Shown here: piece after piece, positions 12,283 through 37,738 of the stretch
Layout: each line of letters opens with the position of its first letter
Numbering within the stretch: the stretch's first letter is position 1
Translations under genes and position numbers: made by a program
Assembly (NCBI GenBank): GCA_011109175.1
Contig: RDEW01000034.1
Span: 150,504-214,503, forward strand
DNA: 64,000 nt
Reading direction: 5' to 3'
DNA from: Dicyema japonicum
Taxonomy: Eukaryota; Animalia; Dicyemida
Notes under the pieces: generated by a model
Databases searched by the model: none
What the model was told of the DNA's origin: nothing
What the model saw: only the letters and a program-made list of their open reading frames with translations

Positions 12283-13428
12283 ACTTTCAAACGAAATTAG
12301 TTTTTCAAAACTTATTGTATCTAAATTTCAGTCGAGTTTACTAACCATCTGAAAAATAATGATGTTTAATCGTTGTTTTTTTGTCTTTAATTTCAGTAGA
12401 TGATTGTGTTTCAAAGCATCCTTCATCTAAAATTCAGTCGGATTTATTTACCATCTCCAATAAATTCAAAAATCAAATCATCACGGAAAATTGTAATTTA
12501 AAGATGAAATTTCGATAGACACATTTTTATAGCTTTGTGAGATGGATCCACAGTGATTATATCCTCCATTTTAATTTGTTTAAATCGCTTTTTAAGTGAA
12601 ACACATTTATCTTTTTTATACCCAACACAAACAGAAAATCTATTAATACGATATTCATTCCCATTTTGTTTATACGCCGTAATAGATATTTTAGAATAAT
12701 CACACGCAATATATATTTATTGTCTGTATAATATGTTAAGACATTATAGTAATAATCACTGAAATGTTCATCTGTATCTACTTATCAATGCAAACGTGTA
12801 CAATTTCGTATTGTCAATATATGATATTTTGATAATTCCACTTATTACTGCTCGGATTCTATTTTGGTTAAATAAAAACCAAATAGGCGTATTTGGGTCA
12901 TATTTGGGTTACAGTCATTAGCTAAAAAATTTTAATAAAAACCTTTTCCAGTAAAATAATACGAAAAACTTTTATCGTTATATTGCAACTTGATTGAATA
13001 AATTGTAACAGATATATATTTGAAAAACTAATATAAGCATAACCACATCGGTAGTAATCCCCATATTTAGTTTTAGGAATTTTTGTGATATTCGTATATC
13101 GCTTACCAGCTTAAGTACAACAAAAAACGTACCATAATCAATTTCTGTTACTAAGTCAATAGTATAAAACTCATTGTAGAAGTATGGAATAAGTTTAAAT
13201 TTTATGTTAGTGAAAGAAAACAAATCCGTACCATTAGTTTCCCATACATCTATATGTTCTTCAGAGATCAACCTTGATAAACTATATTCCTAAAGTTAAC
13301 GAAATATATACTATAGAAGGATTCTTGTAAATTACATATGAATCAATTAATATATATCTCTCATCACATTTTATTTTGACTATTTTGCTAAACAGAATAA
13401 TTATGATATAATGAATAGTTCTGTTCAT
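12283..13428 (-). pseudogene. LAMP-domain-like membrane protein, copy A (3' end lost in the gap; intron-2 acceptor AG mutated; small indels)
   Basis: High identity to 32340-33650; same exon structure. Confidence 0.7.
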
Positions 13429-14163
13429 GTAATCTAAATTTTATTAGGTCAAATTTTATTTTATTTAAATTTTTATCATTATTGTTTGATTTAATTATAT
13501 ATTAAATATCTATGATAAAAGATATTTCATTACCATTTTTATTAAATTCTTAATTATAGAAAATATAGTTAACATTATCAATTTCTCTAACTATTCCTCC
13601 ATTACTCAACAACGTAAGAATCTTGAACAATAATTCCAGCTTCATCCTATCGTTTCTACTAATCAGCTATACAAGTCGGCAAAAACGTAAATTTGAGAAT
13701 AAAACCCACATCTCTTTAATTCTTATTTAAAGAGTAACGATTGGATTCAGAAAACTGTGGTACTTGAAGGAACACAGCAAAAACCTCTCATTCCTGTCGA
13801 GGTCTCTTAATTGATGGTTTAACTCCTTTTTCTTGATGTTTCCTTTTTCGATGTTAGATAATTATAAAGTGGTTAGTGCTTTCAATCACGAATGGCTTAG
13901 TTAGATTCCTACACTTCCGCCCATATTAACAAGGATTCTTCCTTTTTATGTTTTTTCTATTCCTTAAGCACCAATAGGGATCCACATTAATCGAGAAACG
14001 CTATTTCATTTTTACTCCGTGTTTGCAAAACCAGAGAATTTAAAAAAATAATAAATAGCGACAACAAAAAGTGGACGCTGCTCAACAAACCACTAAGAAA
14101 TCTAAGGCGAACTGAGTTGACGTCTGTATTGTCTTCAGCAAACTTTCCGATTTGTTAGCGATT

Positions 14164-15963
14164 TTTGGTGAGGTGGAGACTTACTCGTTTTTTCTCTGTA
14201 CAACGGTTAGAAAAATGTCTGAAAAACACTCATCATACAATCGAGAACTCAGGCTAATGACGTTCAACGTACTTGGAATATCGAATGATTGTTCAAGAAA
14301 CGTACTTTGTGACGATCTCGAGAAATATAAAATATCTATTGGCTGTCTACAATAGACGAAAATCGAAAATGGACACGATGAGACATGGAACAACTACCGA
14401 CTGATTCTCTTCTCAACTGAATGCAAGTACTACGGCATGGGATTTGCCCTACAAAAACCCTATATGACGTCTTTGAAGCTAATACCGATCTAGGACTTGG
14501 ATTGGATTATTAATACCCATTCAAAAACGTTGGTTATTGTTAGGGAAATATGCCATTCAGATGCCTTAATTTAATTTTTATTCATTTGATAATAAAATTT
14601 CTTTCATTAAAAAAAATTCAAAAACCGAACAAATCAAAAGGACCAGTAGAAAATCTTCGCCCGATCATACATCTGAATTCTATACGCAAGGTGCTGGCAA
14701 AAATTGCACAAAGCCGGATAAAGGATGTGGCTGATCTATACCTACCAGCAAGTCAAAGTGGGTTCCGAGAAGGGAGGTCTACGGCAGACATTGTATGGAG
14801 CCACAGATGGCGCTGCGCAACGCGCCAAAGATTCAAGAGCGCAACGACAGTGTTGGGAATAGATCTCTCCAGAGCTTTCAACTTAATAAACAGACAGAAA
14901 CTGATAATTGTGCTTGAGAAAATATTGGATGAATCGTCGGTTAGGATAACCAGACTACTACTTGCAAACACAAGACTATCTGTGAGGATAGAAGGAGCAA
15001 CTTCCTGCAGTTTCAAAGCAACGATTGGGACACCCCAGGGTGATTCCCTCTCCCCTTTACTATTCACCATATACCTTGAATCTGCACTCCGCGACCTTCG
15101 TAAATGCTATATAGGAGACATAGAAGAGACATCTTATGCGGATGATGTGGATTTTGTATCACGGGACGTAACCGCACTCCAACACCTGTTAGAAAATGCA
15201 CCTGCGGAGCTTGAGAAATGGTTCCTCAGTGTAAATGTTAACAAAACTGAAATTACGGAAATCAAAAGAGCAGACGATAACATTCATGAAAGATGGAGAC
15301 GTACAAATAAGCTCTACTAGGAGACGCTGAAGATGTACTAAGTAGGAAAACACTGGCAAATGCGGCAATAGCTAAACTGAAGAAAGGATGGCTAGGGGCA
15401 AAGAACTTGGAATTGACATCAGATGCAGGCTTTACAACGCATTTGTGAAACCGATCCTACTGTATAACGCTGGGACTTGGGGAAGTTCCTTCAACGAACT
15501 ATTGAAACTGGATTCGTTCCATAGAAGGCAACTAAGAAGCTTACTCGGAATGGAGTGGCCACGTAGAATATCAACCACTGGTATCTACAACAAGTGTGTG
15601 TTGTTACATCAGCAAGACGTCCGGTGGAGACTATTTGGGCATGTACTTTTTGGCATCTACTAAGAATGTAATAAGAATGAACCCGGACGCACCGCTAACA
15701 AAGCGATGGAAGATTACTTGATAGTTGCGCAAAAACCCTTCCGTGGACGATTTAGATAGACACTTACGACAGCCTTAGACAAAGACTTAAATCGTGTGAG
15801 AAAAAATCTAAAGACGGGAGGCGACCTGGACGAATTGAGATCACTCGCATTGGACAGAGGAAGATGGAATAGACTAACTATAAATATCGATTCTTTGAGT
15901 GTTGCACATGCGGGGCTATAATCATTATGGCTTTTGTGAAAGTGGCTTAATAATAATAATAAA
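14164..15963 (+). mobile_element. RTE-like LINE, internally deleted, with 7-bp TSD
   Basis: TFNVLG, CLQ, GFREGRST, DLSRAFN, GTPQGDSLSP, YADD; (taa)n tail; TSD AGCGATT at 14157-14163 and 15964-15970; empty site near 34409. Confidence 0.9.
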
Positions 15964-17854
15964 AGCGATTAGGAAAAATAATCTGATTTCTAAATTTATT
16001 CGAAACAATATTACCGGTTTTAGATCTCAGTTAAATTTATCATTTCTGAACTTTTTGTTTAGTGAACTAACTTCCGTTGCTGATCTTAATTCTATGGTTT
16101 TGGCAAGTCGTTCAAATAGTTATGGGTTTTTACATTAGTCTTTAAATAATACAAAATAACTATTCATATTCGTACAAGCTATTTTGGTCCTCTACGCTCA
16201 TTATTAATTTAATTTGAGAGAAGTGGACTGTATAGCAGCCTATATTATAAATTGGAAAATTGTTGTCTTGCTAGAATGTCCGGAATATTGATTATAGAGT
16301 AATTATGCCTGGGGACAATTTTCATTATTTATCAGATTCGACGAATTGATCGTCCCCTGTTAGCAAAAGATCTAAACAACCCCCTTCATAGCCTACCATT
16401 ATGAACCAATAATCATTAAAATGCAATAGTAAAGAATCCAATAATATTTTGCATAAAGAATAATATTTAATGTTAGAATATTTACCCTCGATCTTTAATT
16501 ATGTTTCCCCATTGGCTTTGTGCGTAACTCAAGATATTCCTTGACGACTTCCATATCTACGCTTGTATAAATCGCAGGATCATCGAGTTTAGATCCACCA
16601 AATCATTGCTCTGACAATTACTTTACTACTTCGAGGATAAAGCTAGTTACACATGGAAATTTACTTTATTACTTCGAGGATAAAGAATCAACTCAGAATA
16701 ACGGAGAGTTATGAAAGAAAACGTTCGGAAGTTATGAATTATCTCAAAGGAATAAACCAATAAAGTGGGAGAAATTGAATTGTTTTTGATAGCATCCTGC
16801 AGTATCGCTATTTATTTTTGGTGAACCACCTAAACTGGCGCTAATTAGGAAAATAATAGAACCAAGTAGATAAAAGGGGAATCAAGCAGTAAAAAAATCA
16901 TTATTACATTAAGTGTTTACAATTTTTAATTGATTTGTTAAATGTTCTATTTGACAAGGAAATTATTAAAACTCAGCGTTTACTGAAGAGTACAACATTA
17001 TAAAATGTATGCTGGAGAGACAAGACCTAAGTGTATTAGCAACTCGGAAGTGTAGAAAAGCTTTTATTTAATTTTAATTAAAATTTTAGGAGGAATAAGC
17101 AGGAATTTAATATTATCGTTGATGCTCACATGTTCCGGAATTCGACTTGAAATAATAGTTAACTTTGATATAATAGATTATTTTTATTTTTGACGATGAT
17201 TGACAGTGATGGATCAGTCTCAGCGCTCGCGACATAATATCTATTTGATTTTTGTAAGTTGGATTAATAATATCAAAGTTAAGACGTCGATTTTAGATTA
17301 TGATGTTTTAATCGTTTTTAATTGACTTCGTATCATGACAACGTAGTAAAGGAGGATTTTTTGTTTCTTCACGTTCCCAACACATGAAGAAAGTCCTTCT
17401 TATAGAACTATGACTTCCCTGGACAGTCACCATAATCCTTTCCTTGATCACAAACAAAATTTTTATTATGCACTCGGGAACTATGTGGTTTTCCAAAAAA
17501 CATCTATTTTTGGAATTGCAATATTAAGTTTCATGGGAGTGTTTAAGGCCCACTCACATCCGTTCTGATGAGATGCCTCTAACTCCGTTAATGTCCAGGC
17601 TAAGTATATTTAAGGCCTTTGGTCCCGGATACATTTCAACATCTCATAACATGACGAGTCTCCACCGGAAAAGTGCACAGATGTGTAGGAAGTGCCGTCC
17701 AGGAGTGACTTTTCTGGATGGTCGTTGACAAATAATTCTTTTGGATACAATTTTGATTTGTATCTGACGTCACCAGACAAGACGAACTACATGACGCACA
17801 CTATGTAAAAATATAATGATTTGCTTAATTTAATAAGAATTTATTTTTTTGATC

Positions 17855-18770
17855 AAATTACAATATATTATTTTGATGGAAAAGATTAACTTAAAAAGCA
17901 GGTCCTCTTCAGAGCATTGGACAACCCACATGTCGACCTTAAGTCGTCGACAATATGGCTAAAATTTGGTGACAACTTACCACGATCGGAGGCGCTGTAC
18001 ACGTATATGCAAAACCGCAATATTTTTTGGGGTCGATCACCAAATACATGTCCCCACTGTAAGTCAAAGAGCATGTCGGTTGATCATATAGCCACTTGAT
18101 GTGGATCCATGATCTGCCACGACTATGTGTGAGGCAGAACGAGGTAGTAAGAAGTCTTCATCTTCTACTATGCAATAAATTTGGTATTTGCCACACCAGA
18201 AAGTTGCGTACTTATAAGGTGCAATCTGTAGTATAGAACACCAGAGTACAAATTAAGGTAGACTGTGTTATCCGTACCTCGGTGCTAGTCAAGCACAATA
18301 TACGGACATTGTGCTACACGATAAGTAGTCTGCCCAAGTCCTTATCATAGAGGTTAACATCACGTCTCAAGACCGTTTGCAGAATGTAAAAGTGGAGAAA
18401 AAAAGGAAATTATTACTTTCTTGCAAACGAGATGGGGCAGATGCTTGGTTGCAAAGTGTCGTTATTCCTATAGTATGATGTGGGAAGGAATTGAACAAAG
18501 TAACATAAGGGTGATCTGAATGAGTTGGGAGTAGATAGGAAGCTCCAGATCTATCTAAAGTTAACTGTCTTAAAGCGGACCCTAGAGAGCCTGCCACTGG
18601 AGTACAGGAAGCAGAGCCCTGAGATGACATATGAAAAGGGTTCAATTGGATAAGCGCTCTCGGAGTTGTTTCAGCAACCAGAATCGAACTGCTTGAGAAG
18701 GCTGGCTAACAGGCAGGCAGGAAGGTTGTTGATTATTAAATATATTAACTTTTTTATTGTTGGTTTAATA
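17855..18770 (+). mobile_element. Degenerate R4/Dong-like family A, 3' part
   Basis: Colinear with about 39390-40310 with many indels. Confidence 0.9.
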
Positions 18771-19149
18771 AGTCGATTTAAACGAGATTAGTTGTGATAT
18801 TTTCTGAACTGTTTGAGTATGCCTATGACCCAAATCACAAAGTCTTACAAAAAGACCAAATCAGGTATTTACTGGTCTGCAAATAAGTTAGAATCCATTT
18901 AATCTTTTAGTTGTATCTTAAGACAAAATAGACGGTTAATATTCCACCTGCTTTTTAATTGAAGGAGAACAACATGGCAGATGTCTCTGTTGTGCTCTTT
19001 TTGACTGAATGACCCTTCTGTGATTGCTGAAGTTTTACACTTTAATGTTTTACAATGCTTACGAAAAAGAAGACAAAGTTTTCATTCATCATGAAGCAAA
19101 GTAGATATTTAGTGAATTATGGGTACCTTAATACCTTAATTAAAATGAG

Positions 19150-19270
19150 GATGAAATGGCGTCCATACTAAGAGGGTACATGAGGAAGTTGGAAGTTGAT
19201 AGATCATTCTCATTACGTACAAGAACTGTTCTTAAAAGAATCCTGGAATGTATGTCTCTTTTACGAGAAC
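19150..19270 (+). mobile_element. Old R4/Dong-like 3' remnant
   Basis: GYMRKLEVDR..TVLKRILE resembles family A GYLMQLGVDR..TVLKRTLE. Confidence 0.55.
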
Positions 19271-19394
19271 GGGAGGATTCCTTTGTTCTGTGCTTAAAAA
19301 ATTACAAGAATTATGTTAAGACCAAACTAACTACTTAAATAGCACATTATTTATGAGACATAGGGCTTTTTGAGTTACGGAGTGGTGGATTTGT

Positions 19395-19560
19395 AGGGAA
19401 CATCGAACCGGACCAACTTCTCTGGAGGCCATTATGCAACTAGACTCCATAAATTGGCCCCGTAAATTCAGTCAGCCGCCCAGTACAGCCATGCGCAGCC
19501 ACAGGGGAGGAACATTGGACAAGATGAGGTCTCTAATGGAACGCATCGAATCACGTGATA
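19395..19560 (+). mobile_element. 3' fragment of the I-group LINE family
   Basis: Similar to the reverse complement of about 10970-11135. Confidence 0.7.
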
Positions 19561-21699
19561 ATGAGTTTACTATCACCATGGTTTTGGGATTTTAAATAAA
19601 CAAGAGGCTTATACTAGAAGATGCCAAAAACTATCCAACCTCACACACAAGAGACCAATTCCAACAAATTCACTAAGAGTTGATGTAATGACAATTTGCC
19701 TTCTATCATGGTGGTGATAATAAACAGATGTTCACGCTATTCCTCTCTTTCTATATTAGGGATATCAAGTTATTGTTTTATCGGATTGATAGTTGTTGCT
19801 TTTTTAATTTTATTCCAGTAACTATGATGGTATTCATTAGGTTGCCAAGTAATTGACTGATGTTTACTCCACCGTTGAAGAAACGGTATAGTCTATCAAG
19901 AACTCCTTCCGGAGTGTGAACCTCCATTCTGTCAACAGTCAGGAAGAAGTAAGATTAATTTGAATTCTTCAGACATTCATCAAGTACTCTTCTATCATTT
20001 GAAGGGATCAGATTGACCGACTTTCTTGCGGGACCTTCCAATGTACCAACTGTAAAGCGGTAAAGCCTCCGCGAATGCCTCAAAGTATATCGATCTGGGT
20101 GTCCTTCTTTGTGACCATCGTGATATGCAAACGTTTAGTTCCTTAATTATTTAATATAGTTTATAGAGTTTGGATGTGGATATCGCATACGTTTATGGGG
20201 ACAGGAATATTCAATTATTGGATTCTATGATTTAAATATACAATATGAATATGCAGTATACAGAAGGGAGGGGGCACTTGTTTATAATTGCCTTTAAAAT
20301 ATACATCGCGAGGAATTATTATTTATCCCCAAAAGGGTTAACCAAAGTAAAAAAGTTAAGCCACTAATAAAGATCCCGGCAGTCTTCAAACATGCGCGCG
20401 ATGTTTCTGCAAAGCTCCTTTATAATTCCCACTGCATTCTTAAACTCCTTTTTCATCAGAATTTTTAGTGGTGCGGGTTTCTTATGAAATTTACATGTTT
20501 CAGCAGCTACTACCGTTGATTGACGGAAACAGTGAGATTCGACGCCACAGAAAGTGAGGAACAAAATTAGTGTTTATTGGAGTTACCAAAAATATTTAAT
20601 TTTTTGTTTTTAATTTTATTTTTTATAATTAATAAATTGATAATAATTTTAAATAAATATATATAGCTTTGTGGTGTTGAATGGATCCTGTCAATCTATT
20701 TCTTTCTTAACTGATGTTTTACTTCACGCAAATGATATGATTGACGAAAAAAACTTTCATTTTCTCAAAACGCAAGAATCTGACGAAAGTGTAAGTAGAC
20801 TAATATAATCTCAGACTCTTAAATTTTAAAAATTTGAATTCACTCGAGCCATATGACAGACCACTCAGACTATTGGGGATGAAACTACTAATGAGTACAT
20901 TCTCACTAATAGAATTGTTAATTCAATGTCCTCAGAAGATCGATTTGTACTTACTGATTGTTATATTTAGTTGGAAAATATGTCCAATAATGATGATTTA
21001 TCCTCTTAAATGTTATTTTGAAATATTATTTTATATACAAATAGGCAAAGATTTTTCGTCATAGTTAATTCCTCATATTCATTCCCCCATAGTGTCTCGA
21101 GACACTCAGTGCAAGCATGCTGTAAAGAGATCATTTTCTCTCTTCCCTCTTCCATTAAGTTATTTTTTGGAGTTCCCACAACAGTGTGCCAGTTCCTCGT
21201 TCTTAGTTCGGGTCTTTATCTTCATTTCTTTATGGTGTCACATGATTTACGTTTTTCAGAAGGAACTCAATTCTTATAAACTCCGTTTATATACGCTTTT
21301 AGACTTTACTCGTGTTTTTGTAAAGTTAAGGCTTCATCATAAATCTTTTCTGTTTTTTTATAACGTGAGAAGAATGGATAAATAATTAAGTTGATTTCTA
21401 CATGTTCCTTCAAGACTGTTGATTGTTTAGATAAGAGGTTCCCAAACTTTTTTATCCATTGCCTTCATAGCAAATCAGAAAAAATTGATAGCATTATAAA
21501 TTCAATTGTGTATGACTTGTCTGATTTGTTGATAATTAAAGCGATGAGATGCAACAACACGATCGCTCAATATGAAATTTCATAGCCTCATTGAAGAACG
21601 ACTTTAAGTACATACACTACAATGATTTACACTTGGGTGATTTTAATTTTTAATTTAATAACCTTGGATACACAAAGAAAGAAATTAAAAGTAAACAAC

Positions 21700-21900
21700 T
21701 CGTTAAATGTATCCAGTTTCCAATTCTACAGAAACAGAGCCATCCGGAATCAGCATGAAAAACAGACGTCCATTACTTGCATTTGTGAGAACACCTACAG
21801 TCGAGTGGGGGAGAGCAAACGATCCTTTTCATGCCAGCTTGACACTGGGCGCCACTTATACAGGTAGATATAATGACCCACTCTACTAAAAAGAACAGAA
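21700..21900 (+). mobile_element. Short internally deleted I-group LINE derivative
   Basis: Similar to 54355-54600 and to the reverse complement of 11880-11945. Confidence 0.55.
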
Positions 21901-22079
21901 AAAACAGATAACTACATTTAATTAGCTACGTAACATCTTTTGAAGACACCTGACGCCACGTAGCATACAAAATCAAATACATGATTTTAAAATACTAGTT
22001 GGATAAATTATTATAATATATTAAATGCATAATTATTAAAATATATGAATAATCGTTTAACACCCACCAGAAATTCATC

Positions 22080-23030
22080 GCTCCCAAAGGCGCAAAACGT
22101 CAATTCATTTCATATCGTCAACTGTGGGAATCACTATAGATGAACTACTTCGGACCAAACACTCCAGACAATTCTAGAACTATACAAAAAAGATGGTTTC
22201 TATCAATTTTGAAATTAACCATCCGTTGGCGTCTTATATCACTGTCATTTATGTTAGTGGTAATTTTCTTTGAAATATCAGATATGAGAAATCCCAAGAT
22301 AGAGATCACACATTCTCTTTATTTCCCAAAGAGATCGAATACTAAAATCAAGGCGCATGGGAATTTGGGACTAAAATCTTTGAGAGGTTTCTTTAAACAC
22401 AACATCTTATCTTTCCATATTCAACTAAAGAAGTTCTCATAAAAACTGATATGAATGACAGGGTGCTTTAAAAAATAACCCTAACTATGACCGTGGGAAC
22501 TAGGATCACTTAAAGGATTTCTTTCTTTTTCCTTAACCATTGGTCAAAAATTAAAAAAAATTTAAAATGACATTCTTGGATGGGCCAAATCTCATCACGT
22601 TGACATAAGTGCTTATACCAAAATAATGAATAGTTCAACCTACTAAAATGTATCCTTGAAGAGCAAGACGCTTTGTCGAGAGAACATTGTTTTTCAAGTG
22701 GTAAGGGACTGCAGTGTATGCCAGTGCAACGAATATCACAAAATTGTGTTAAAAGTTCAGAATTACCCAGATCCATGGGAGGCGGAACAATTACCAGACT
22801 CAGAGAATCGTAGAAAGATTTAATCAGACTATCACGAGGTTATCGAAAAGATTGTTTTGGCTAACAAGATTGGATAAATACAATCGAAAGGCTATGTGTT
22901 ATACAATAAAATACCTCACTCATCCGCAGGTATAGTGGTTCTTTTATTTTTTTGTAGGTGTTAGCCCGTTCAAGAGATTTCGAGGGATTCGTGGATTCTA
23001 CACTATTGTTGCAAATTCGTCAAGCGATTT
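22080..23030 (+). mobile_element. Ty3/Gypsy LTR retrotransposon pol remnant
   Basis: VRDCSVCQ (integrase zinc finger), RIVERFNQTI (integrase core), KEVLIKTD (RNase H-like). Confidence 0.5.
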
Positions 23031-23879
23031 CGTCGATGTAAAATAGTCAAGGATCTGTCATGAAATTCAAGTCAGCAAAAAGCAATATTAGTCTGTAATC
23101 TCAGTGGCAATTATCGAGACCCTTGATGTCAGAAATTTGAAGGCAACATGTCGACTTTTTGTAGTTATTCAGTCCTGACAAAGTAGCTGTGTGTTCGGAC
23201 GGGCATTGAGGTCTCTGTAATTGGATGTAAGGATGGTTGGCATATGAGATCATCCAACCGTGAATCGAACATAAGTGAAAGTAAAGGGACGTCACCCCCT
23301 CAGTCAAAAAGGGTAAAAGATAGATGTTTGTGTTAGAATTATTATTTTAATAATTTTGTATTTTTTTAAATAATTAATTCCTAATTTAAATCTTTAAATA
23401 AAGACTGAATAAAAACCGACTTCACTTTGTTATGCCAGTCAGCACACATTAAAAAGCGAGAAGCTAATGAGCGAAAATATGAAGCAGTGCCACAAAGTAA
23501 GATATAGATTCAATTTAGGACATGAAACTAATATTAACGGGCAACATGAATGTTCCATTAGATCTCCCGATGGATAGAATAGTTGGATCGTATTGATAAC
23601 TGGCATGGGCGTCTACTTAGTAAGGTAGATCCAATGACTCCTTTAAAGGGTGCACAGTAAATTTTAAATCAATTAGCCACATAGCATCATATGGCGCCTC
23701 ACGGCTGACTTGTTTTATGTATTTAAATGAACAACCAAAGGACAACCAGATATTTTGAAATTGAAAAAGCATGTTTGAATTTTTCAAAATTATTATTATT
23801 TGTTAAAGTTTAAATTAAATATAATTTAGTTAGAAATCAAAAGATCATTTAACAGTTTTTTTGTGATTTGCTCTCCCTC

Positions 23880-24390
23880 AATGCACTGAGGGGTTCCCAC
23901 AACTGCAAGGAATGGACGTCTATTAACTTTTATGCTGGTTCCGAATGTACTTGTGTGATGTTGAAGGACTCTGTTTCAGTAACAGTGGAAACTGGATACA
24001 CTTAACTAGTTGTTTACTGTGTTACCTTCTGCGTATCCGGGATTAATAAATTAATTATTTAAACAACATAACATTCCCTCGATAATTCCCACTGTCTCCT
24101 ACTTCCCTTATTACAATTCTGAGGCTCGCAGTTTTGACTTGGCAAAATAACAAAATCGATAGCTGAGGCCTCTGCAAAGTGAAGGAAATTTGATTCCTTA
24201 GGAAAAAATTAGAAATTATCAGAACTTGATTATGCTTACTATAAGATAGTGCACCAGAACTCATGGATTTCCAACGATATGTGCGCTTGTGTGATCTCTG
24301 TTCTCCACTACTAAAACTCATATTGAAGATGTAAGGCTGCAAAAATAGCTCCAAAAAAAATGCTGTCAAGACTCATGGGAATACTCAAAT
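23880..24390 (-). mobile_element. I-group LINE fragment
   Basis: Nucleotide similarity to 11860-12000. Confidence 0.6.
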
Positions 24391-25049
24391 AGTACGTGTG
24401 ACAGAATTTTTTAAAATAAGAGGAAATTGGGGGAAGACATTGCAATAAAGATTTATGTTCTGTTATACAAGGAAGGTCTTATCAAATAGAATTGAATATT
24501 TTATTTCATTTTTGCTAAATGTAGCTTTCAATTTATGACAAAAAATCTACTCTGGTTTACATCTACTTCTCCCTCATATTTCCTCCTTCCAACTTTATTT
24601 CAAGAAATTACCAAGAAACATATCAGTTAAGTCGAAACCGACTACACTTTGTTTCGACTTCATCTTTTAAGTTCGCTCTTCCATGTCCACTCGGAGAATG
24701 GCATGACAAGGAGAAATCTGCTATCCAATACTTGCTTCGATTTTTGGTTACATCTTGCTTTATTTTGAAGATCCGTCGATGACTGGGGTCCACAAGGAGT
24801 TGAGGCTAATATTTAATTATAGGAAAGATGAGGAACTAATTCCCTCTGGTTTCTTTTCGAATCTAAATAATTTTCACTCCAACCATATCTTAGTTGACTT
24901 ACCTTTATAATTGGGGGATTCAACATAACCTACCATTTTGCATTAATCGTTACTTTTTTACTAGATCGTTCACTTAGAACATTCAATTCCACAAAGCTGT
25001 TGATTGTACCATGTTTTATTATTAGCACATGTTATCGACTAACTACTAA

Positions 25050-25980: not shown

Positions 25981-27179
25981 TCTCATTTTGGTCGGAAATT
26001 TGTAAAATTGTTAGTTCTTAAAGTTTAACTACTAATATTCTAGTGAGCTGTGAGATCAACATCGACCTTTTCTACTTTACTTGGGAAACTTAATGAGCTA
26101 GGGGTTTTTCACAGGTGTTAACATCAGAAGACTCAGCTTTTCTCAATTGACATAGACTTTAGACTCACTATCACGAAGACACTCAGTATGAAGTAATTTT
26201 TGGTAAACTCATTATCTGGATGGATAGTTATCTTGACGGTCAGAAAAGACTTACAGTCAAAGTCTACTTTTTTACCCCCTTCAAATAACTCAAAAAATCT
26301 TAGGGGTGATTTTTGCACTTCTCATCACATGATTTAGATGTAGTGACAAATTGTGAAAATAGGACAAATGGACTAAAAAGTCAAGATTTTTAATATTTTT
26401 ACATTGAATTTTTATTGTAGCGTCAATAGCAACATTTTAGTGGATTTTCTATAAATTCAGTGAATTTTAATTTCATATTAATTCCATTATTATTGTAAGA
26501 CCAGAAAATCACCATTAACAAATTTTATAAAAACTAGAGAGCTATAATACCTATCAGAGCTTATACAGGGGAAAGGTTCCAGTTACCAAATATTTTATTT
26601 ATACTTATCTAGACCCCCTTGATCACCTAGAAAGACAGAAAAAGCGTCAGACAGTAAGCTAATCTTAGTTCCCACAATCAATGTAACTGTTCAACGTGTA
26701 TGGTCTTCTTTGAACGACAGTCTGAGATGAATAACGTGCATATTGATCGTAGTCAGTAGTACTATCTTCAATGGAATGATTGATTTATACTGGAGAGATC
26801 TTCGAAAGGCTTTGGTTCCGCGAACGTCTCGGAATTGCCATCGTTCACGGCTTATCCTGCCTGCCTACTTTTTTTGGTCCTTTTTTCTATAAAAATGAAA
26901 TGTCAGCTTATCTAATACCTAAACGAGGTATTTTTTTAGGATTTCTCTGAAACTTCGTTAAGCGATTAGGAGAACGATAATAAAACTCTATCTCAACTGA
27001 AATCTCAACAGTTCTATGCATCAACTAACTGCGATTTGCTGAAAACTTATAGTAAGAACGCGGATAAGAGGTCAAATAGTGAATCAGTAGATTTCCATAA
27101 TATTATTGCTTCCGATATATTCTGAGTAGCTGATAAAAACCGAATTTGTTGTTTAGCAATTAATTTTGACTAAATATCT

Positions 27180-27620
27180 TGTGTTGGACTACCTAAAGAG
27201 AAGTAAGGCCTTCATATATTTCAAATAATGTCTTGGATAAAAATGACACGTCTCATTTATTTTAAAAGATCAATAGAAGTTCATAATTATTTTAAAAAAT
27301 TTCATAAAACAAGTAAAGTCAACGATATTTAAGGTTTTGTTCGCGATATTTAGGTATCAGCTACATGTCTTTAAGAGAACTGGAGATTAGCCTTTTAAGA
27401 GCCAGAATATGTATAAAGACAGAAAAAAGGTTTCCAAGAACTTTTTAGATACTGAAACGTGTATATATGGGGAAATTGCTACTTTTCTTGTCAGGAAGCT
27501 GAGTTAATAAAAAAAGTACATAAAGCAGGATACAAACAAAGCTCTGCAGGAACTACCACAAAATGATTCAATTAATCGTTTATATCACATTATTGAATCA
27601 AAATCATTTAAAAGAGGTGT
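27180..27620 (+). pseudogene. Second decayed TIS11/ZFP36-like CCCH copy
   Basis: Inverted homolog of 4330-4720; KNFLDTETCIYGE..KAGYK..LCRNYH. Confidence 0.65.
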
Positions 27621-27699
27621 GGTGTAATCAGCGATAATCTCAGATGGAAAATAAAGAACGAAAAAAACGAAGTACGAGGAACAACGCCAGTACGGACAA

Positions 27700-30470
27700 A
27701 TCAAGTAAGTTTTTTATGTAGACAATGGAATAAAAGGAAATTTGGAATAAATTGCACCCTATGTGAATCATTCGTCCATTTGGGATACATAAAAATGAGA
27801 AAAGCTTGGGCCGAGACGCTGTCGAGTTGGGTGTGCCCCTCTTGTATTGGAATGGGATTCCCCAGGCAAGAAAAAATAGCTAAGCCTAACTTTACACTGC
27901 CACATACAGACCACACTCTCTTGAAGATCTCGAACCTTTTGAAAGCCATAAAGATCTCAGTAAAAATCCCTAAAGGAGTACGAATTGCCGCAGCAACGTG
28001 TCTTTCAGATACCATTGGGAAACTGAAACGAAACATAATGGATTTTAGCTGTCATAACTTACACGTAATACTTGAACAGCCACTTTATGTAAATGAGGTC
28101 GAAACCAGAGGAGCATTCATCAAGAATGCCCCCAACAAACTAAAGGAGAAAGTAAACCGGAAGGTTCTCGAAGGCGACGTGCGGGCAGCCATACGGGTTA
28201 TCACGTCTGATACACAATATTGTCTTGTACCCCCGAAATCCTAAATACCTTAATACTGAAGCACCCAGATGCGACGACTGACTATTAAGGAACCCAAGAG
28301 ATTATCATTACCGAATCCGAAGTGCGCCACGGAATAACTTCCTTTGCCGCTAGCAGCGGTGGAGGTTTGGAAGAGCCATATTAAGGACCTTACGATAACT
28401 TACACCTCGGAAGCTGGACGCTGTCTCGTCTAATCAATTACGGACCTAATCAGAAAAATGGTCAACGGCGACATCATAGAATAGGCCAGAGAATTGCTCT
28501 TCTCCGCAAGGCTACTTGCTATCAAAAAACCAAATTGAGGAATCCACCCCATTGCGATCGGGAAGTATTTTAGAAGACTTGCAGCAAAGGCATCGACCCT
28601 GGTGAGCCGACAACTTGGAGAGGAGTTCTTTCTAAACAAATGGGTGTTAGTATCCAGAACGTATGTGAAGCTACGGTTCACGGAGAAAGGCGTTTCTTCA
28701 CACAGAATAATATTTCAAATGAATTCATTGGAATCAAGTTGGACATAACGAATGCATTCAATTTTTTCAGAAGAGATAAAATTATGGAATCGTGTTGAAA
28801 GAGGGCTCCAAAGCTTTTCCCTCTTGTCAAATTATATTATGGGGACGATGGTTTTGAAAACGAAATTATTAAATCAAAAACGGGGGCCCAACAAGAAGAT
28901 CCGCTCGGACCTCTCTTATTTGCCCTGACCATTGATGATGTTGTAAGATCAATTGTTGCCCAGTTTAATCTCTAGTACTTCGATAATGCCACAATTAGAG
29001 GATCATTAAGAAAACATACAATTCATTACGTAAAGCGTTACCCGCATTAAAACACTTGTGCTTGGACATCAATGTTAATAAATCAGAGCTAATAAATGTC
29101 TCATATCCATACACCGACTTCATCTCTATCAAGGAGACTTTTAACGAACTGCTTCCTGGGATCCCGACTGTGCCAGTAGATAAATTGTATTTTCTCGGAT
29201 GCCCACTCAGCGAAGAAGAACTCAAGAACCATCGACATTTCTAAAATGAAAAATTAACACGCCTCGCGAAAATATTGTCATGTTTCGACTCTCACACATC
29301 TTTCTTCGTGATGAGAAACAATATCGGACTACCCAAGCTTTTGTATCTACTCCGATGTACACCCTACTACGAATAATAAGACAGTCTACTTTCGATAAAC
29401 AAATCTCTCAAACAAACTGTTGAGTCACTAATTAACGTCCGCTTCGACGAACTTGGTTGGAAGCAATGTAAACTTCCCTCTGGATTTTTGGATGTAGGTC
29501 TAAGATCGGCGCTGAAGGTTACGTACATATCTATCGTCTCTCTCAAGCTGCAGCCATTTGACACGGCAAGTCCTTCATAACACTATTGGACTTCGCTGGA
29601 ATGATTCAATTGACGAAGCTTGTCGGAAATGGAACGAATCCGGACTCAAAATTCTCGAAGACACAACAAAGCAAAGTAATTGGGATAAAATTGTCTGCTC
29701 AAAAATTTTGGAAGACCTTAAAAAGAAACAAATCAACATCATCTGGCTTGTTTGGTGTGAACATCAAGTGGAAGGAGTGAGCATGGCTTGGTGCAGTACA
29801 TTGCTCGAACCTCTGGACTTTTTGGAAGAGGTTATTTGAGGATCGAAATTGGACAAAGGCTGGGAGTAGACGCTTGCCAGGAACACAGATGCCGATGCTT
29901 GAAAACAGTCGATGTTAAGGGATTGCACCCGCTGTCCTGCAGAAGAAGCGCCGGAAGAGGACTACGTCATGCCGCTCTGAACGATGTGATCATCAGAGCT
30001 CTAAAGCTACAGGCTTCCCAACACAGCTTGAACCAGTGGGTCTTGATCGAAAAGATGGAAAGAGACCTGACAAGATGACCCTTTTTTCTTTCACGTCTGG
30101 AAGATCTTCGGTCAGGGACGCAACTTGTGTTGACACGTTCTCAAGCACGAATATTTACAAATCGGTTCAAACACCTGGATCAGCTGCTTCGACTGCGGAG
30201 AACCTAAAAATCAAGAAATAATCTAGCCTCGTGACTTGTACCGATGTACTCCTGTTGCGACAGAATCATCGTGAGCCGTTGGTCCAATGATGGCTGAGTT
30301 CTTGCGAGAACTCGGAAAAATGCTTGCCAAAAACAAAAAAGATAAACGAGAAGGGTTATGGCTTAGACAAAAGATTGGATTGGTCATATTACGAGGACTC
30401 GTGCACAATCCACGCAGCAAACTTCCTCAACTGACATTTGTTTAATAGTCAAAAAAATAAATTTTACATT
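27700..30470 (+). mobile_element. Near full-length degenerate CRE-like retrotransposon with an N-terminal PHD-like finger
   Basis: CTLCESFVHLG..WVCPSC; HPIAIGKYFRRLAAK; KLDITNAFN; QQEDPLGPLLF; RHAALND; KRPD; WLRQKIG; sits between the two halves of the duplication of 2540-4720. Confidence 0.85.
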
Positions 30471-30479
30471 AAAAAATAT

Positions 30480-31880
30480 TTAATGGATGATACACGCTAT
30501 TTTGTTATGATGTATGAGAGAATTTGCGAAATCGTTGAGTTATGCTAATTAAACGTGATGTTACTGTGAGATTAATATTTGTATACTTCAAAGATTAATT
30601 AGAATAACCCTTGCGAAACTGATGTTTTGGAAGAGTCTGAATTCATTCTTTCGTGTTTGTACAAGCCAAGCGAAATTCTTGATGAACTCGATAAAATTAG
30701 GAGCAAGCACTCAAACGTCTGTACATAAATCTGTCAGAAATAATATAGAATTCACTTTTTTTATATCCACCATCCAAGATTTTAGTATCAAAAACACAAG
30801 ATCTCCCATGTTGAAGTCTTTAAACAAATAATCAAAAACTAAATTTTTAATTTTGTATCTGTTATGGCCATAACAGGCAATTTAAAATCATTTCTTTTTG
30901 TGAGGGTCTCTGAGCCTCAATTGTATTTCTTACCTTATTGATGTCCCCTTTACTTATTATCCTAACCGCTCCAGAGGTTTTTCTGTACAAACAAACCTCG
31001 CTTGAGACGATTGTGCGACAGTCATCCTAACTAGAGTCGCAAGAAACCTGACCAAGACGCATGATTTTATATCGGAGTCAGTTGATGTGTCCAATTTCAA
31101 TGGTTGAAAGATCAAATTGACATTCTGAACTCATTGGTGCTTATAGGTTAGATTATAAACTTAGATATTTTCAGATCTCAACTATTCTCAAATATTCTAG
31201 AATGTCAAATTCATTCTATCTATTTTAAATTAAACACACTTAAAATTTATCTCATGTAAAAATCTTCATGTCTTCCAAGACGAAAAAATCTGTTAAGTTC
31301 AATCGCTCTTGATCTATTTCATTCCTAAGGAATTTTCCATTCAAATTGCAAAAGTGGAGAATCCAATGTTAGAAGACGCACGTTAGTTGGGAGCACTTCG
31401 TTGTTATCCATAAGCATATTAATACTTAGGGTTCGGCTAATACCCTGCACTTCTATTTGTTCTACCAGTTTTTTATATGCAGTTTTTCTCTTGCACGTAT
31501 TTTGTAGTTTATCAAGGTCGTTAGTTTTTTCCATTCAGTCATGAACTTGGACATGATTTTGATCATGACTGAAGCTAGTCAAATTTAATGACACAGAATA
31601 TTTACAAGATTGTTTTCAGGTCTCCGTTATTTTTCGAAGCACTTGAGGTAACGGCTCTCACTTTGCTGCCATCTTCGTTGGTCACACTGTTGTTACATTT
31701 CAGCGTCCTCCAGAAGGTGCCACACGAACATTTTTAATAAATTGATATTCGCTGTAATATCGGTTATTCGTTTTTGTGAGAGATAAACAAGGAAAAAGTA
31801 TCATTAACTATTCCTACGAGTTTTGAATATTCCAAAAGATTAATGATGCTTAAATAATATTAAGACTTTAAAACATGTTA
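30480..31880. repeat. Inverted paralog of 2540-4075
   Basis: See 2540-4075; includes ORF remnant 31325-31534. Confidence 0.8.
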
Positions 31881-32199
31881 CAGCCCCCTTGTTCAACATA
31901 AACGAACAGGAAAAATAATTTGACTAAGAAATGTTTAATTCCTTGTGCACAATTACTTTAAAATCGAAGAGTGGAGAATTCGATAGGGTTGTTTATATAT
32001 TTGATTGTTTGATAAAAATTGCGATTTCTTGAATCGAGAAAGAGATTTAGAAGAGACAAATTTTGGCATAAATCATTTGGTAAACTTTTTTGCAATTGAC
32101 AAAATTCAAAATTTTTTAAGTTTTTCAAATATCGTCTTAGTTTAAATAATTAAATAAATTCTGATACGAAAAAAATAGAAGACGAGTTACGAATTAAAA

Positions 32200-33650
32200 T
32201 TAGTTAGTAAAAGAGTTAAATCTATTGCTTTCTTGTATTTCAGTATGTGATTTCAGTTTAATAAAAATAGCGACAATGAGACATATGAATATTATTCCAA
32301 CAACTCCACACACGATTCCAATTATTTGATTTTTCGTCAATTTTTTTACGGCTTTACTTTCAAACGAAGTTAGTTTTTCAAAACTTATTGTATCTAAATT
32401 TCAGTCGAGTTTAATAACCATCTGAAACATAATGATGTTTAATCGTTGTTTTTTTGTCTTTAATTTCAGTAGTCAATTTTTTTACGGCTTTACTTTCAAA
32501 CGAAGTTAGTTTTTCAAAACTTATTGTATCTAAATTTCAGTCGAGTTTACTAACCATCTGAAAAATAATGATGTTTAATCGTTGTTTTTTGTCTTTAATT
32601 TCAGTAAATGATTGTGTTTCAAAGCATCCTTCATCTAAAATTCAGTCGGATTTCTTTACCATCTCCAATAAATTCAAAAATCAAATCATCACGGAAAAAT
32701 TGTAATTTAAAAGATGAAATTTCGATAGACACATTTTTATAGTTTTGTGAGATGGATCCACAGTGATTATATCCTCGCATTTTAATTTGTTTAAATTGCT
32801 TTTTAAGTGAAACACATTTATCTTTTTTATACCCAACACAAACAGAAAATCTATTAATACGATATTCATTCCCATTTTGTTTATACGCCGTAATAGATAT
32901 TTTAGAATAATCACTATGCAATATATATTCATTGTCACTGTAATCATGTGATAAGACATTATAGTAATAATCACTGAAATGTTCATCTGTTATCTACTTA
33001 TCAATGCAAACGTGTACAATTTCGTTATTGTCAATATATGATATTTTGATAGTTCCACTTATTACTGCTCGGATTCTATTTTGGTTAAATAAAAACCAAA
33101 TAGGCGTATTTGGGTCATTATTTGGGTTACAGTCATTAGCTAAATAAATTTTAATAAAAACCTATTCCAGTAAAATAATACGTAAGACTTTTATCGTGAT
33201 ATTGCAACTTGATTGAATAAAATGTAACAGATATATTATTCGAAAAACTAATATGAGCATAACCACATCGGTAGTATTCCCCATATTTAGTTTTAGGAAT
33301 CTTTGTGATATTCGTATATCGCTTACCAGCTTAAGTACAACAAAAAAAACGTACCATAATCAATTTCTGTTACTAAGTCAATAGTATAAAACTCATTGTA
33401 GAAGTATGGAATAAGTTTAAATTTTATGTTAGTGAAATAAAACAAATCAATACCATTAGTTTCCCATGCATCTATATGTTTCTCGGAAAGTAACCTTGAT
33501 AAACTATATTCCTAAAGTTAACGAAATATATACTATAGAAGGATTCTTGTAAATTACATATGAATCAATTAATATATATCTCTCATCACATTTTATTTTG
33601 ACTATTTTGCTAAACAGAATAATTATGATATAATGAATAGTTCTGTTCAT
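32200..33650 (-). CDS. Two-domain LAMP-like type I membrane glycoprotein, copy B (six micro-introns; two homopolymer frameshifts that may be sequencing errors)
   Basis: Signal-like MNRTIHYIIIILFSKIVKIKC; YYRCG..IKLQ..FTGI|ANDC; YNHCG..FKLQFF..FIGD|DEGC; TM IIGIVCGVVGIIFICLIVAIFI; tail ..SNRFNSFTN; introns 33512-33533, 33301-33326, 33140-33161, 32994-33017, 32635-32659, 32530-32554. Confidence 0.7.
32337..32607. repeat. About 135-bp tandem duplication inside copy B (real or assembly artefact)
   Basis: Units about 32337-32471 and 32473-32607, nearly identical. Confidence 0.85.
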
Positions 33651-35577
33651 GTAGTCTAAATTTTATTAGGTCAAATTTTATTTTATTTAAATTTTCATCT
33701 TAATTGTTTGATTTAATTATATATTAAATATCTATGATAAAAGATATTTCATTACCATTTTTATTAAATATCTTTAATTATTGAAAATATAGTTAACATT
33801 ATCAATTTCTCTCCTTAACTATTCTTCTATTACTCGACAACGTGATCATCTTGAACAATAATTCCAGCTTCATCACTATGCGGCTCCAAATCCTATCGTT
33901 TCTAGTAATCAGCTATACAAGTCGGCAAAACACGTAAATTTGAAAAAAATCCACGTCTCTCCAAATTCTCATTAAAGAATAACGATTGGATTTAGTAAAG
34001 CTGTGGTAATATGATGGAACACAGCAAAAACCTCTCATTCCTGTCGAGGTCTTTTTTTATTTTCTTTTTTCGATGTTAGATGATAATAAAGTGGTTAATG
34101 CTTTCACTCACGAATGGCTGTGAGTTAGATTCCTACACTTCCACCTACATTAACAAGGATTCTTTCCTTTTTTTGCTCTCTATTCCTTAAGCATCGATAG
34201 GGTATCCACATGAATCGAGAGCACTTTTTCATCTTTACTACGTGTTTGATTGGCTATTTCATATTACTCCGTGTTTGCAAAACCAGAGAATCCAAAAATG
34301 TAATAAATAGCGACAACAAAAAGTGTACGCAGCTCCTCAAACCACTTAGAAATCTAAGGCGAACTGAGTTGACCCCTGTATTGTCTTCATCAAACTTTCC
34401 GATTTGTCAGCGATTAGGAAAAATAATCTGATTTCTCATTTTATCCGAATCAAAATTACCGGTTTTAGATCTGAGTTAAATTTATCATTTCTGAACGTTT
34501 GTTTAGTGATCTAATTTCCGTTGCTGATCTTAATTATATTGCTTGAGCGCTCACTTAGATCTGGGCATTAAGATCCGATTCCCTAATCCAGATCCAACAT
34601 TTTGGTTGCCTAGGATATGTGGCGTTAGACAATTTTGAAGATCTTTATAAGACTAAAAACCAAATCGGGAATGTGGTGCTGAAAAATCAGTTAACCATTT
34701 TTTACGTTCATTTAAGGGAACGAGAGAAGTAAAACGTCCATTGATGAGATCCTTTTTGGAATGCATCGGAGTCATGTGATAATTAATTTGGTTTTAACGT
34801 GGTCTTGGGCAGTTATAAACAAATAAAATACAAGTAATCGACTTCTCCAAAAAACTTTCTACATTTATGGCAGACAGATCCAAACGACCCCTTTACATAG
34901 CCGCTAGCATTATGAATCAATAATCATTAAAATGCAATGAGTAAAGAATCCAATAATATTTTGCAAAAGAATAATATTTAATCTTAGAATATTTACCCTC
35001 GATCCTTAATTACGTTTTTCCATAATCGGCTTTGTGCGTAACTCAAGATATTCCTTGACGACTTCCATGTCTACGCTTGTATAAATCGCAGGGTCATCGA
35101 GTTTAGATCCACCAAACATCGCTCCGACGATAAAATTATCCAGTTACGCATGGAAATTTACTTTACTACTTCGAGGATAAAGAAAATCAACTCAGAATTA
35201 CGGGAAATACTTCGTCTATATTTCTATTGAAAATAATAAAATATATTTGAGTTATGAAAGAAACGTTTGGAAGTTATGGATTATCTCAAAGGAATAACCT
35301 AATAAAGTAGGAGAAGTTGAATTGTCTTTGATAGCAGCCTGTAGTATCGCTACCTATTTTTGGTGAACCACCTAAAATGGCCCTAATATAGAGAATTAAG
35401 AAAATTATTAGAAAAGTAGATAATTAAGGAATCAAGCAGTAAAGACATAATTATAACATTAAATGCTTACAATTTTTAATTGATTTTTTAAATGTTAATT
35501 TGACACGGAAATAGAAATAATACTCAGGGTTTAATAAAGAAAAAAATTTTGACGTCTCAATTATTTTATCTAAAAAA

Positions 35578-36060
35578 TTATATGCTGATGATAAATGGTT
35601 CCAATTGAAATTTCGATTTGATATAAAAAGTAACACCGAGTCCAGTTATATACAATGCGATAACTACGCATACAATTCCAATTATTAGATTTTTTTCCGT
35701 TTTTTCGAGGTTGATTGTTGCACAAAACATCCTTCATCTAAAATTAACTCCTATAAATTACCTTTCCGATAAATCCAAAAGTCGAATCATTACGGAAAAG
35801 CTGAAATTTAAAAGACGAAATTTCGATAGAAACTCCATTGGTGTAGTTTTGTGAAATTAATCCGCAATGATAGTGATTGCCTTTTTAATCCATTTAAAGT
35901 TTCGATGTATGTAAAAACAATTTCTAATCTTCACTTTTCTAGCACAAAAATAAAATTTAAAATCCGATATTCATTATCAGCCATATATGCCAAAATCGAG
36001 ATATAAGAATGAGTACCAGACAATCGATATTCACAAAGATAATCGACCAAACTATTAAAA
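35578..36060 (-). pseudogene. LAMP-like copy C, 3' part only (5' part replaced by a CRE fragment)
   Basis: HYHCGLISQNYTNGVSIEISSFKFQLF..FIG|DEGC; TM LIIGIVCVVIAL..; 24-nt intron 35738-35761. Confidence 0.65.
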
Positions 36061-36099
36061 TATTCATAATCATGAGCGAATACTCATCCTTAATCTAAT

Positions 36100-36760
36100 G
36101 TCTTCCGAGAGAGGTGTCTGGCTCAACGCCATTCCCAATGGTTTTGGGTACCTTCCTGGATGATGAATGCGTCTGTTGAGATCTCATTACAACTGTATTA
36201 AAATTCTGTGTTTAACATACGTGCCGATTCGGATACCAGGTCGAATGATTTGGCCTACATTTTTTCTCCTGCAGAAAGAGCCCAGGCAGATTTTCCAGAA
36301 ACATGGCATTGAGAGAAGTCTTTAGACGCACTTTGGACGCCGCCGGACACCGCTCCATGCTTAAACCAGTCAGTCAAGAAACGACCAGATGAGATAAACC
36401 ATCTTCCCTTTTGAAGCAAGGAAACCATCTCTCTGGAACGTCACCTTCACCGACACGTTTACCTGTTGCAACAAACTCCACAATGCCTCTGGAGCCTGTT
36501 CTATCGCTGAGAAGGCCGAGAGGTTGAAACGGGTAAAGTACGCAGTTCTACCCAAAGATTTCTGTTTTGTTCCACTCGCCGTTGAGACGTTTGGTTCCCT
36601 TGCGCTTGCAACACAGGAATTTTTAAGTTGTCTAGGGAATCGGATTTCTACACGATCTGGAGACCCTCGTGAACGCTGCTGCTTATTCGAGCGAATCTCC
36701 TTGCTATCCTGAGAAGGAATATCCATGCAGTCAGGGCAGCCACTATATGATCATTTGTTT
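36100..36760 (+). mobile_element. CRE-like 3' fragment
   Basis: GVWLNAIP; KYAVL..FVPLAVETFG; GDPRE..FERIS. Confidence 0.8.
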
Positions 36761-36959
36761 TCTTTTCTTTCCTTAATAAGTTATTTATTCATCAATTAAA
36801 AAAATTTGCTAACAGTTAAATTTTGACAAAATTGACACATATAAGAGAATAACTTAGTTATGGTTCAATAATATATCTTAGTTGCCTCAGGTTGCACTTC
36901 ACTGTAGAAAAAGTAATAATGAAAACACAGCTAAATTAATATTCCCATAAGTTAGTAAA

Positions 36960-37738
36960 CTATATTTTCAATTTAAGGGGATCGAATCTATTTGAAAGTG
37001 ATTCTCTGCTTCTAATTTTGTTCACTTTGAAATATGTCATCAACGAAATGATAAAAAGTGAAGTAATAATAATTCCTATAATCATCGGCATCTTGTCACG
37101 AATGAAACTGTATGACTTTTTTGTCTTCCTCCTATTCACGTCCAACAGACAATCATGAGCTAATCATGATACGACAAACTAACCTGTACCAATAAAATCC
37201 GAAACTGTGCCTTTTATGAGAAACTGCAACCTTAGATCCAACATTACTAACGTAATGTTGCTATTTTCAAATCTTAATTTGCTACATCTAAAATATTCAT
37301 CAGTTTTATGCCAAATTTCAACTCGGTAGATAATTTGCTTTTTGGAATCTAAATAAATCGCACATTTACCGTTATAATAAGCTACAACTTGAATATCAGT
37401 TATTTTAACCGTCCCATCCTCGTAGTCAAAATAAAAACAAAGATCGTAAATATCCTCTGCTAAAGTCGCTTTATACGAACGAACGTTAAATTTTGGATTG
37501 GTGAATGTAAACTCTGGCTTTTATAAGCAAAACAATTTACCTTCTTATGAATAATGATTCGTATTGTACCACTGAGGATGGCTGTTACATTATTATTGAT
37601 GAATGCTATCCACGTTGAAATTCCATTTTTATCAGATTGGATTGATTTGGTATTTTGTCCACATTTAATGCTGAATGAGATTAAAATATAAAAAAATCTA
37701 AAAAATAGTTCAATATTAAGGTAACATATATGACCCAT
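36960..37738 (-). CDS. Single-domain LAMP-like type I membrane protein, copy D, apparently intact (about 243 aa, two micro-introns)
   Basis: Splicing 37518-37540 (23 nt) and 37160-37183 (24 nt) gives one open frame: hydrophobic N-terminus, EYFRCS..LRLQF..FIGT|AHDCLLD, TM MPMIIGIIITSLFIISLMTYF, tail ..SNRFDPLKLKI. Confidence 0.75.

Follow-up and report, generated by a model that had tools for sequence, protein, structure and literature searches.

The four LAMP-like loci in the Dicyema japonicum window analysed here (the 64,000 nucleotides at positions 150,504 to 214,503 of contig RDEW01000034.1) are best read as members of a Dicyema-specific multigene family descended from an animal LAMP (lysosome-associated membrane glycoprotein) gene, a reading to which we give a probability of about 0.78. 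An earlier note, made from the letters of the window alone, had described four related loci on the minus strand, A to D, and all four are seen where it had placed them when the strand is read. Its treatment of all four as a family of genes holds for B and D, which are intact, but A is a broken duplicate of B and C is a truncated and frameshifted copy.

12283-13428, minus strand: locus A, a duplicate of B that is either defective or poorly assembled and is interrupted by a run of N (assembly gap), as judged from the alignment to B
32200-33650, minus strand: locus B, an intact gene of 8 exons for a two-domain LAMP-like type I membrane protein, based on open frames and paralogue-conserved introns
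35578-36060, minus strand: locus C, a frameshifted member of the L056 subtype that is truncated at its 5' end, leaving just the C-part exon, the intron and the membrane exon, as judged from alignment to B, L056 and L057
36960-37738, minus strand: locus D, an intact single-domain gene of 3 exons

The product of an intact gene would consist of a signal peptide, one (D) or two (B) luminal domains of the LAMP fold, a mini-exon stalk, one membrane helix and a tail of ~20 residues. Each luminal domain would be closed by a Y.C...Q.F...G/..C block split by a phase-1 micro-intron, where the slash, here and below, marks the intron.

Gene models of the two intact loci

The window is AT-rich and its genes are split by GT-AG introns of ~20-25 nt, a type of intron already described for D. 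japonicum (PMC13644364). We worked out the exon frames and the phase-1 intron positions by hand from the minus-strand sequence, with the following result for B (frame and intron layout) and D.

33650-33534, minus strand: B exon 1
33511-33355, minus strand: B exon 2
33329-33162, minus strand: B exon 3
33139-33018, minus strand: B exon 4
32994-33017, minus strand: revised B intron 4, 24 nt, phase 0, with GTA at 33017 in 19/19 rows shown and AG ending at 32994 in 19/19
32993-32660, minus strand: B exon 5
32661-32972, minus strand: core of B exon 5, which covers the C-terminal two thirds of domain 2 and has ~45 hypervariable codons at its start
32634-32551, minus strand: B exon 6
32529-32419, minus strand: B exon 7
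32393-32200, minus strand: B exon 8
32394-32554, minus strand: B stalk region with a 136-nt tandem module (111-nt mini-exon plus 25-nt intron), from paralogue alignment
37738-37541, minus strand: D exon 1
37517-37184, minus strand: D exon 2
37159-36960, minus strand: D exon 3

Locus B is laid out as a signal peptide, domain 1, a hinge of nine N/P-rich residues, domain 2, a stalk, a membrane helix and a 19-residue tail. Domain 1 closes with ..YYRC...LQY...F.G/(A)NDC, and domain 2 opens with W.LF......A.ISGTI.I and closes with ..NHC...LQFF...F.G/(D)EGC; the two introns concerned (33161-33140 and 32659-32635) are both phase 1 and GT-AG. The stalk exons 6 to 8 are the least certain portion of this gene model. 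The 136-nt module is single in most paralogues, and in B the stretch 32472-32300 aligns a second time to the same part of the paralogues.

Locus D has introns of 23 nt and 24 nt, of which the second (37183-37160) is again phase 1 and GT-AG and lies before the last Cys. Its single domain closes with ..FRC...LQF...F.G/(A)HDC and is followed by the membrane helix and the tail. As the earlier note had proposed, the open frames give two tandem domains in B and one in D, and the phase-1 intron stands just before the last Cys, two to three codons upstream of it, in both B domains and in D. The shared blocks which it had pointed out are real: comparing B with D by BLASTP gives E 4e-5 for the N-part block W..F.....A..SGTI.I and E 4e-4 for the C-part block Y.C...LQF..F.G. 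The Y.C ... C pair bracketing the Q.F block is likewise present in both B domains and in D, as far as the sequence can tell. Both genes appear to encode type I membrane proteins, with a hydrophobic N-terminus, one helix of 20-23 residues and a tail of 19-22 residues, read by eye and not by a predictor. The note's membrane helix and short tail at the ends of B, C and D are thus found in B and D, but the helix of C is out of frame with its domain.

The micro-introns that the note had given as 22-26 nt are conserved among paralogues, but those of the LAMP-like genes measure 21-25 nt and the boundaries of one, intron 4 of B, were revised. Intron 4 could alternatively be read as 33011-32994 (18 nt) or 32997-32974 (24 nt). 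The revised 24-nt form (GTA at 33017 to TAG ending at 32994) fits all 19 copies compared and the 18-nt form fits 16, while the candidate GT at 32997 is kept in just 5/19 paralogues. With the revised boundaries the residues ITDEHFS are coding and domain 2 of B has four Cys.

Several other candidate readings were rejected. Removing 33326-33301 from B (a 26-nt GT-AG stretch) leaves a 3-nt exon or a stop codon, and the in-frame 21-nt GT-AG stretch 37480-37460 of D is not needed as an intron and aligns to coding sequence in a paralogue (L038). A read-through frame of exon 3 in the B-type loci was rejected since exon 3 in the spliced frame, which belongs to domain 1, fits the family profile (hhalign E 1.6e-9) and has a dN/dS of 0.2-0.4 at its start. 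Frames of 170-252 residues, taken as whole domains in a single frame, are actually a C-part exon joined by an in-frame intron to a membrane exon, or the wrong-frame read-through of exon 3 in B-type loci. Exon 5 of B (32680-32990, minus strand) also contains a second open frame of ~100 codons rich in I, N, K and L, which is the longest open reading frame (ORF) in some broken paralogues (L009, L018 and L019). We take this frame, by conjecture, as a by-product of AT-rich codon use.

Kinship to LAMP in sequence and fold

The family is linked by its profile to one canonical LAMP. All database, family and fold searches were made with single exons, not with joined spliced proteins. We searched 1.84 billion proteins exhaustively with a 40-sequence exon profile of the family (A3) and found two matches at E <=0.001 and no close relatives. 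The first match, P0002 (E 2.2e-4, profile positions 11-97 on residues 280-376), is a canonical LAMP by Pfam (PF01299 3.9e-21, PF21222 1.5e-16) with a tail ending in ..GYESV. The second, a Big_2 repeat protein of bacterial origin, matches the profile in eight short stretches, and we regard it as compositional. Aligning the family alignment A4 to P0002 with hhalign gives E 5.7e-5 over 88 columns, and the F.F...KY.I, G.YY.C and K.QFFR blocks of the family fall on the matching LAMP blocks of P0002. When the six-frame genome is scanned with PF01299, only family members are matched, all at model positions 46-108. Four of the 27 exons scanned singly match PF01299 (best E 1.8e-4), and no other Pfam family recurs among them.

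The predicted structures point to the same fold. The AlphaFold model of exon 5 of B (pLDDT 78.4) was compared by VIA-align with 48,161 PDB representatives, and the six best chains are all LAMP-fold, with Z-scores of 5.1-6.1. These six, the only ones with Z >=5, are LAMP-2, ATP6AP1 (6xbw_s and 8xli_c), LAMP-3 and LAMP-1 (two entries); the next rows have Z 4.5 and 3.7. The model of exon 2 of D (pLDDT 71.5) finds four LAMP chains and one ATP6AP1 chain at ranks 4-10 of the 48,161 (Z 5.3-6.1) and a second ATP6AP1 chain at rank 19 (Z 4.8). The aligned range always corresponds to the C-terminal part of the LAMP domain, which is what the exons modelled should match. The models thus support a LAMP beta-prism fold for the domains of B and D, over the C-terminal two thirds of a domain. 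Of the checks that the earlier note had suggested, the AlphaFold and Foldseek one, done here on single exons, gives LAMP-3 as first match for B but nothing clear in Foldseek for D. Its Pfam check likewise gives a divided result, i.e. no match in the exons of the window but matches to PF01299, below the cut-off, in paralogues elsewhere in the genome.

A number of points weigh against our reading of the loci. The Pfam scan of the window's own exon pieces is the null result just mentioned, and the paralogue exons, scanned singly, reach 15-19 bits on PF01299, under its curated cut-off of 27.2 bits. A word-index search of a 15-billion-protein collection with exon 5 of B found no family member, though Dicyema may simply be unrepresented there. 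Folding was done on single exons with the family alignment and covers the C-terminal two thirds of a domain; the structural Z-scores are middling (5-6), and the LAMP-fold scores of the D model tie with avidin-like and outer-membrane barrels. B and D are without dense N-glycosylation, having five and two sequons, respectively, and one of the five in B lies in the signal-peptide exon. Many copies in the genome are broken, and the variable segments discussed below were picked after their sliding-window dN/dS had been inspected.

The domain might also be an unrelated beta-sandwich whose likeness to LAMP is convergent or due to chance, and this we consider very improbable. Such an origin would agree with the missing Pfam match above the cut-off, with the avidin-like barrels that tie for the D model, and with a protein atlas search in which exon 2 of D found only weak bacterial beta-sandwich neighbours of the carboxypeptidase-regulatory-like kind. 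It would also agree with the PDB sequence searches: profile A2 reached LAMP-1 at E 0.49, behind an adiponectin triple-repeat construct that we rejected as spurious, and profile A3 gave no match at all. However, a canonical LAMP, aligned in register, is the sole non-repeat match among the 1.84 billion proteins, all six PDB chains at Z >=5 for the B model are LAMP-fold, and the canonical LAMP genes of Dicyema itself have the same closing block and intron position. Taking sequence and fold together, we regard the homology of the family to LAMP, which the earlier note had put forward, as established with little doubt.

A large family with intact and broken copies

The family has at least 150 copies in the genome of D. 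japonicum, a parasite of the octopus kidney. The assembly searched has 67,542,437 bases in 377 contigs; the published genome is reported as 67.5 Mb in 377 scaffolds, with 36.7% GC, a mean intron of 38 bp and 5,012 predicted genes (PMC6736024). The largest exon of B has 112 matching places in it, and the N-part exon of B and a distant paralogue have at least 150 matches each. Profile A3 gave 431 first-look candidates, and all of the 150 that were scored have E <=4e-8, which answers the paralogue count proposed in the earlier note. Roughly half of these 150 span nearly the whole profile without a stop (hand count), and the other half are partial or have stops. The copies are arrayed on many scaffolds and comprise several subtypes, D being part of a small D-type subfamily. 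In the closest B-type copies the duplicated unit begins ~570 nt before the ATG and extends ~140 nt beyond the stop codon; it includes the gene with its flanks and is therefore a gene duplication unit, not an obvious transposon. One divergent member (L058, G000:C1:1087600-1090900) contains an N and has a near-identical partial copy of itself on either side (96% and 85%), which may reflect local duplication or an assembly artefact.

This may be the largest gene family in a genome of 5,012 reported genes. The largest characterised gene cluster in the D. japonicum genome paper has 16 copies, and LAMP is not mentioned in that paper (PMC6736024); a full-text literature search for dicyemids together with LAMP returned nothing relevant. 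The family was probably missed earlier or masked as a repeat, because introns of 18-25 nt break every reading frame.

Loci A and C appear non-functional as assembled. A duplicates B at 90-96% identity, with 96% across the gene, and the duplication of ~1.9 kb (14163-12283 in A, 34415-32492 in B) takes in 765 nt upstream. We interpret A as a pseudogene or a badly assembled copy because its exons carry eight frameshifting single-base indels and it runs into a stretch of N. C is nearest to L056 and L057 and is without any upstream exon, its homology beginning at the intron before the C-part exon. Its homologous reading is spread over three frames, and its domain and membrane helix lie in different frames because of frameshifts relative to the intact L056. 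A GC-richer block resembling a transposable element (36100-36760), apparently a transposon fragment, adjoins the 5' truncation point of C.

Selection along the gene is strongly patterned. We aligned 18 loci to B, giving 19 B-type copies, of which about 10 are open in all five exons. Four of the B introns keep GT-AG in 18-19 of the 19 copies, and the length of intron 2 varies freely (22-25 nt) while the exons carry almost no indels. The introns differ less between copies (5-11%) than the exons do (7-18%). Per-exon dN/dS is 0.5-1.0, and within the core of exon 5 the sliding value falls from 1.3-2.3 over the first 45 codons to 0.4-0.6 at the end. For the nine fully open paralogues, the variable segments, which were chosen after this inspection, have a dN/dS of 1.59 (bootstrap confidence interval (CI) 1.14-2.37) and the remaining 220 codons one of 0.58 (CI 0.43-0.79), with equal dS in both codon sets and estimates that take no account of gene conversion. 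The variable segments are the first 25 codons of exon 2 and the first 45 of the exon 5 core, counted from 32972, downstream of the seven ITDEHFS codons. The scaffold is thus shown to be under purifying selection and the two segments to carry excess amino-acid change. The dN/dS comparison suggested in the earlier note hence separates 1.59 in the variable segments from 0.58 elsewhere. Its description of the family as lineage-specific and fast-diverging is borne out by that excess, by the copy number and by the lack of close relatives among 1.84 billion proteins.

It is improbable, in our view, that the family is mostly dead DNA, i.e. a LAMP-derived gene amplified as a repeat whose copies, including B and D, drift without function. 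The broken state of A and C, the half of the 150 scored exon matches that are partial or have stops, the overall per-exon dN/dS of 0.5-1.0 and the lack of any family protein in the public protein sets searched are what such drift would produce. Yet about 10 of the 19 B-type loci are fully open, with essentially no exon indels at 8-18% divergence, and the CI of dN/dS at the scaffold codons excludes 1. Splice sites are kept in nearly every copy while intron 2 is free in length.

Canonical LAMP genes and the tails of the expanded family

The expansion sits beside ordinary LAMP genes in the same genome. The LAMP membrane segment (PF21222) is found at four genomic places, all outside the window, with 27.1 bits for a canonical gene. 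One locus (L065, G000:C1:1193800-1197100, minus strand) has two tandem canonical LAMP genes, at least one of which contains a threonine-rich mucin repeat of the TTTTTPNTTM type. Both have the closing block of the family (..LKAQFFR...F.G), the family intron position and a LAMP-type membrane segment, and their tails end in ..NYEPLI and ..SYEEVN. The suggestion of the earlier note that the loci do not represent a single lysosomal LAMP is therefore upheld: separate canonical genes have both the membrane segment and the tyrosine tails, and B and D have neither.

A C-terminal motif, [EQ]-[YSN]-[IF]-P-[LMI]-[ILF], is common to the canonical LAMP gene and most subfamilies and is gone in B and D. It occurs in the following forms.

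L001 subtype: ..E-Y-I-P-I-F
L061 subtype: ..E-N-I-P-M-I
many B-type copies: ..E-S-I-P-L-I..
L045 subtype: ..Y-S-I-P-L-I
canonical gene: ..Y-E-P-L-I

The tail of B ends in ..ESNRFNSFTN and that of D in ..NRFDPLKLKI. Neither has a tyrosine, in contrast to the L001 subtype and the canonical genes of Dicyema, and B and D are also without a PF21222 segment and without a G-Y-x-x-hydrophobic sorting signal. The shared tail motifs resemble tyrosine-based and acidic-dileucine adaptor signals.

The family resembles LAMP-1 and LAMP-2 (PF01299 plus PF21222) in its type I topology, in the two tandem luminal domains with a hinge (B), in the fold of the modelled part and in the closing Y.C...Q.F...C block. 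In B, D and the canonical LAMP of Dicyema, the last intron still falls within the luminal coding part, shortly ahead of the final Cys and the membrane helix; for human LAMP2 it is reported only that exon 9 is in part lumenal (PMC10549195). The family differs from LAMP-1 and LAMP-2, which come in one or two copies, by its hundreds of copies, its hypervariable segments, its few sequons and its very short hinge, and its similarity stays below the Pfam cut-off; B and D moreover have no PF21222-type segment or G-Y-x-x-hydrophobic tail. Locus D, whose single LAMP-like domain leads into a membrane helix and a short tail, is like LAMP-3/DC-LAMP, CD68 and LAMP5, and LAMP-3 (4akm) is among the best structural matches of both models. 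Unlike these proteins, D has no mucin-like N-terminal region and lies within a small subfamily of the expansion. ATP6AP1/Ac45, a V-ATPase luminal domain, scores Z 6.0 against the B model, level with the LAMPs, but no link at the sequence level was found and the family profile matched a LAMP instead. The canonical Dicyema LAMPs share the closing block, the intron position and micro-introns with the family, and differ from it in the threonine-rich mucin region, the PF21222 segment and the tails in Y-E-P-L-I or Y-E-E-V.

The copies might be ordinary lysosomal LAMPs in large number, forming a protective lysosomal glycocalyx of a heavily endocytic cell with no role at the host interface. Dicyemid outer cells do take up food via endocytosis (PMC6736024), and adaptor-type motifs are kept at the C-terminus in most subfamilies. 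We nevertheless think this explanation rather unlikely, as the tyrosine motif and the LAMP membrane segment kept by the canonical genes are missing from B and D, as these two have few N-glycosylation sequons, and as excess amino-acid change in defined segments is unexpected for a passive coat.

Other features of the window

The window has two ORFs with LINE-type reverse-transcriptase domains.

14550-15320, plus strand: LINE reverse-transcriptase ORF (RVT_1 E 1.6e-30)
38115-40274, plus strand: LINE reverse-transcriptase ORF (RVT_1 E 2.2e-27)

The first sits upstream of A within an insertion of ~1.8 kb that breaks the upstream homology between A and B. Two further ORFs on the plus strand, 912-1655 (247 residues) and 52631-54064 (477 residues), have no Pfam match at E <=0.01.

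A possible repertoire at the host interface

The proteins of the LAMP-derived family would line the apical and endosomal membranes of the endocytic outer cells, with their variable segments facing the host urine as a diversified coat or a cargo-binding repertoire. Most subfamilies probably cycle through endosomes, because their tail motif resembles adaptor-binding sorting signals, and B and D, which have lost it, may remain at the cell surface. We speculate, quite tentatively, that a lysosomal coat protein was converted here into a large, positively selected and variable receptor or coat repertoire between parasite and host.

To our knowledge, the animals studied so far have one to five LAMP genes each. 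If it is real, the interface repertoire would be a LAMP-based counterpart of the variant surface families of protozoan parasites and would take up a few percent of the gene set of an animal whose genome is among the smallest. The only exposed tissue of a dicyemid is an endocytic epithelium bathed in cephalopod urine, and the family offers a handle on the contact of these animals with their hosts. It also serves as a natural experiment in which a conserved lysosomal fold tolerates hypervariable segments.

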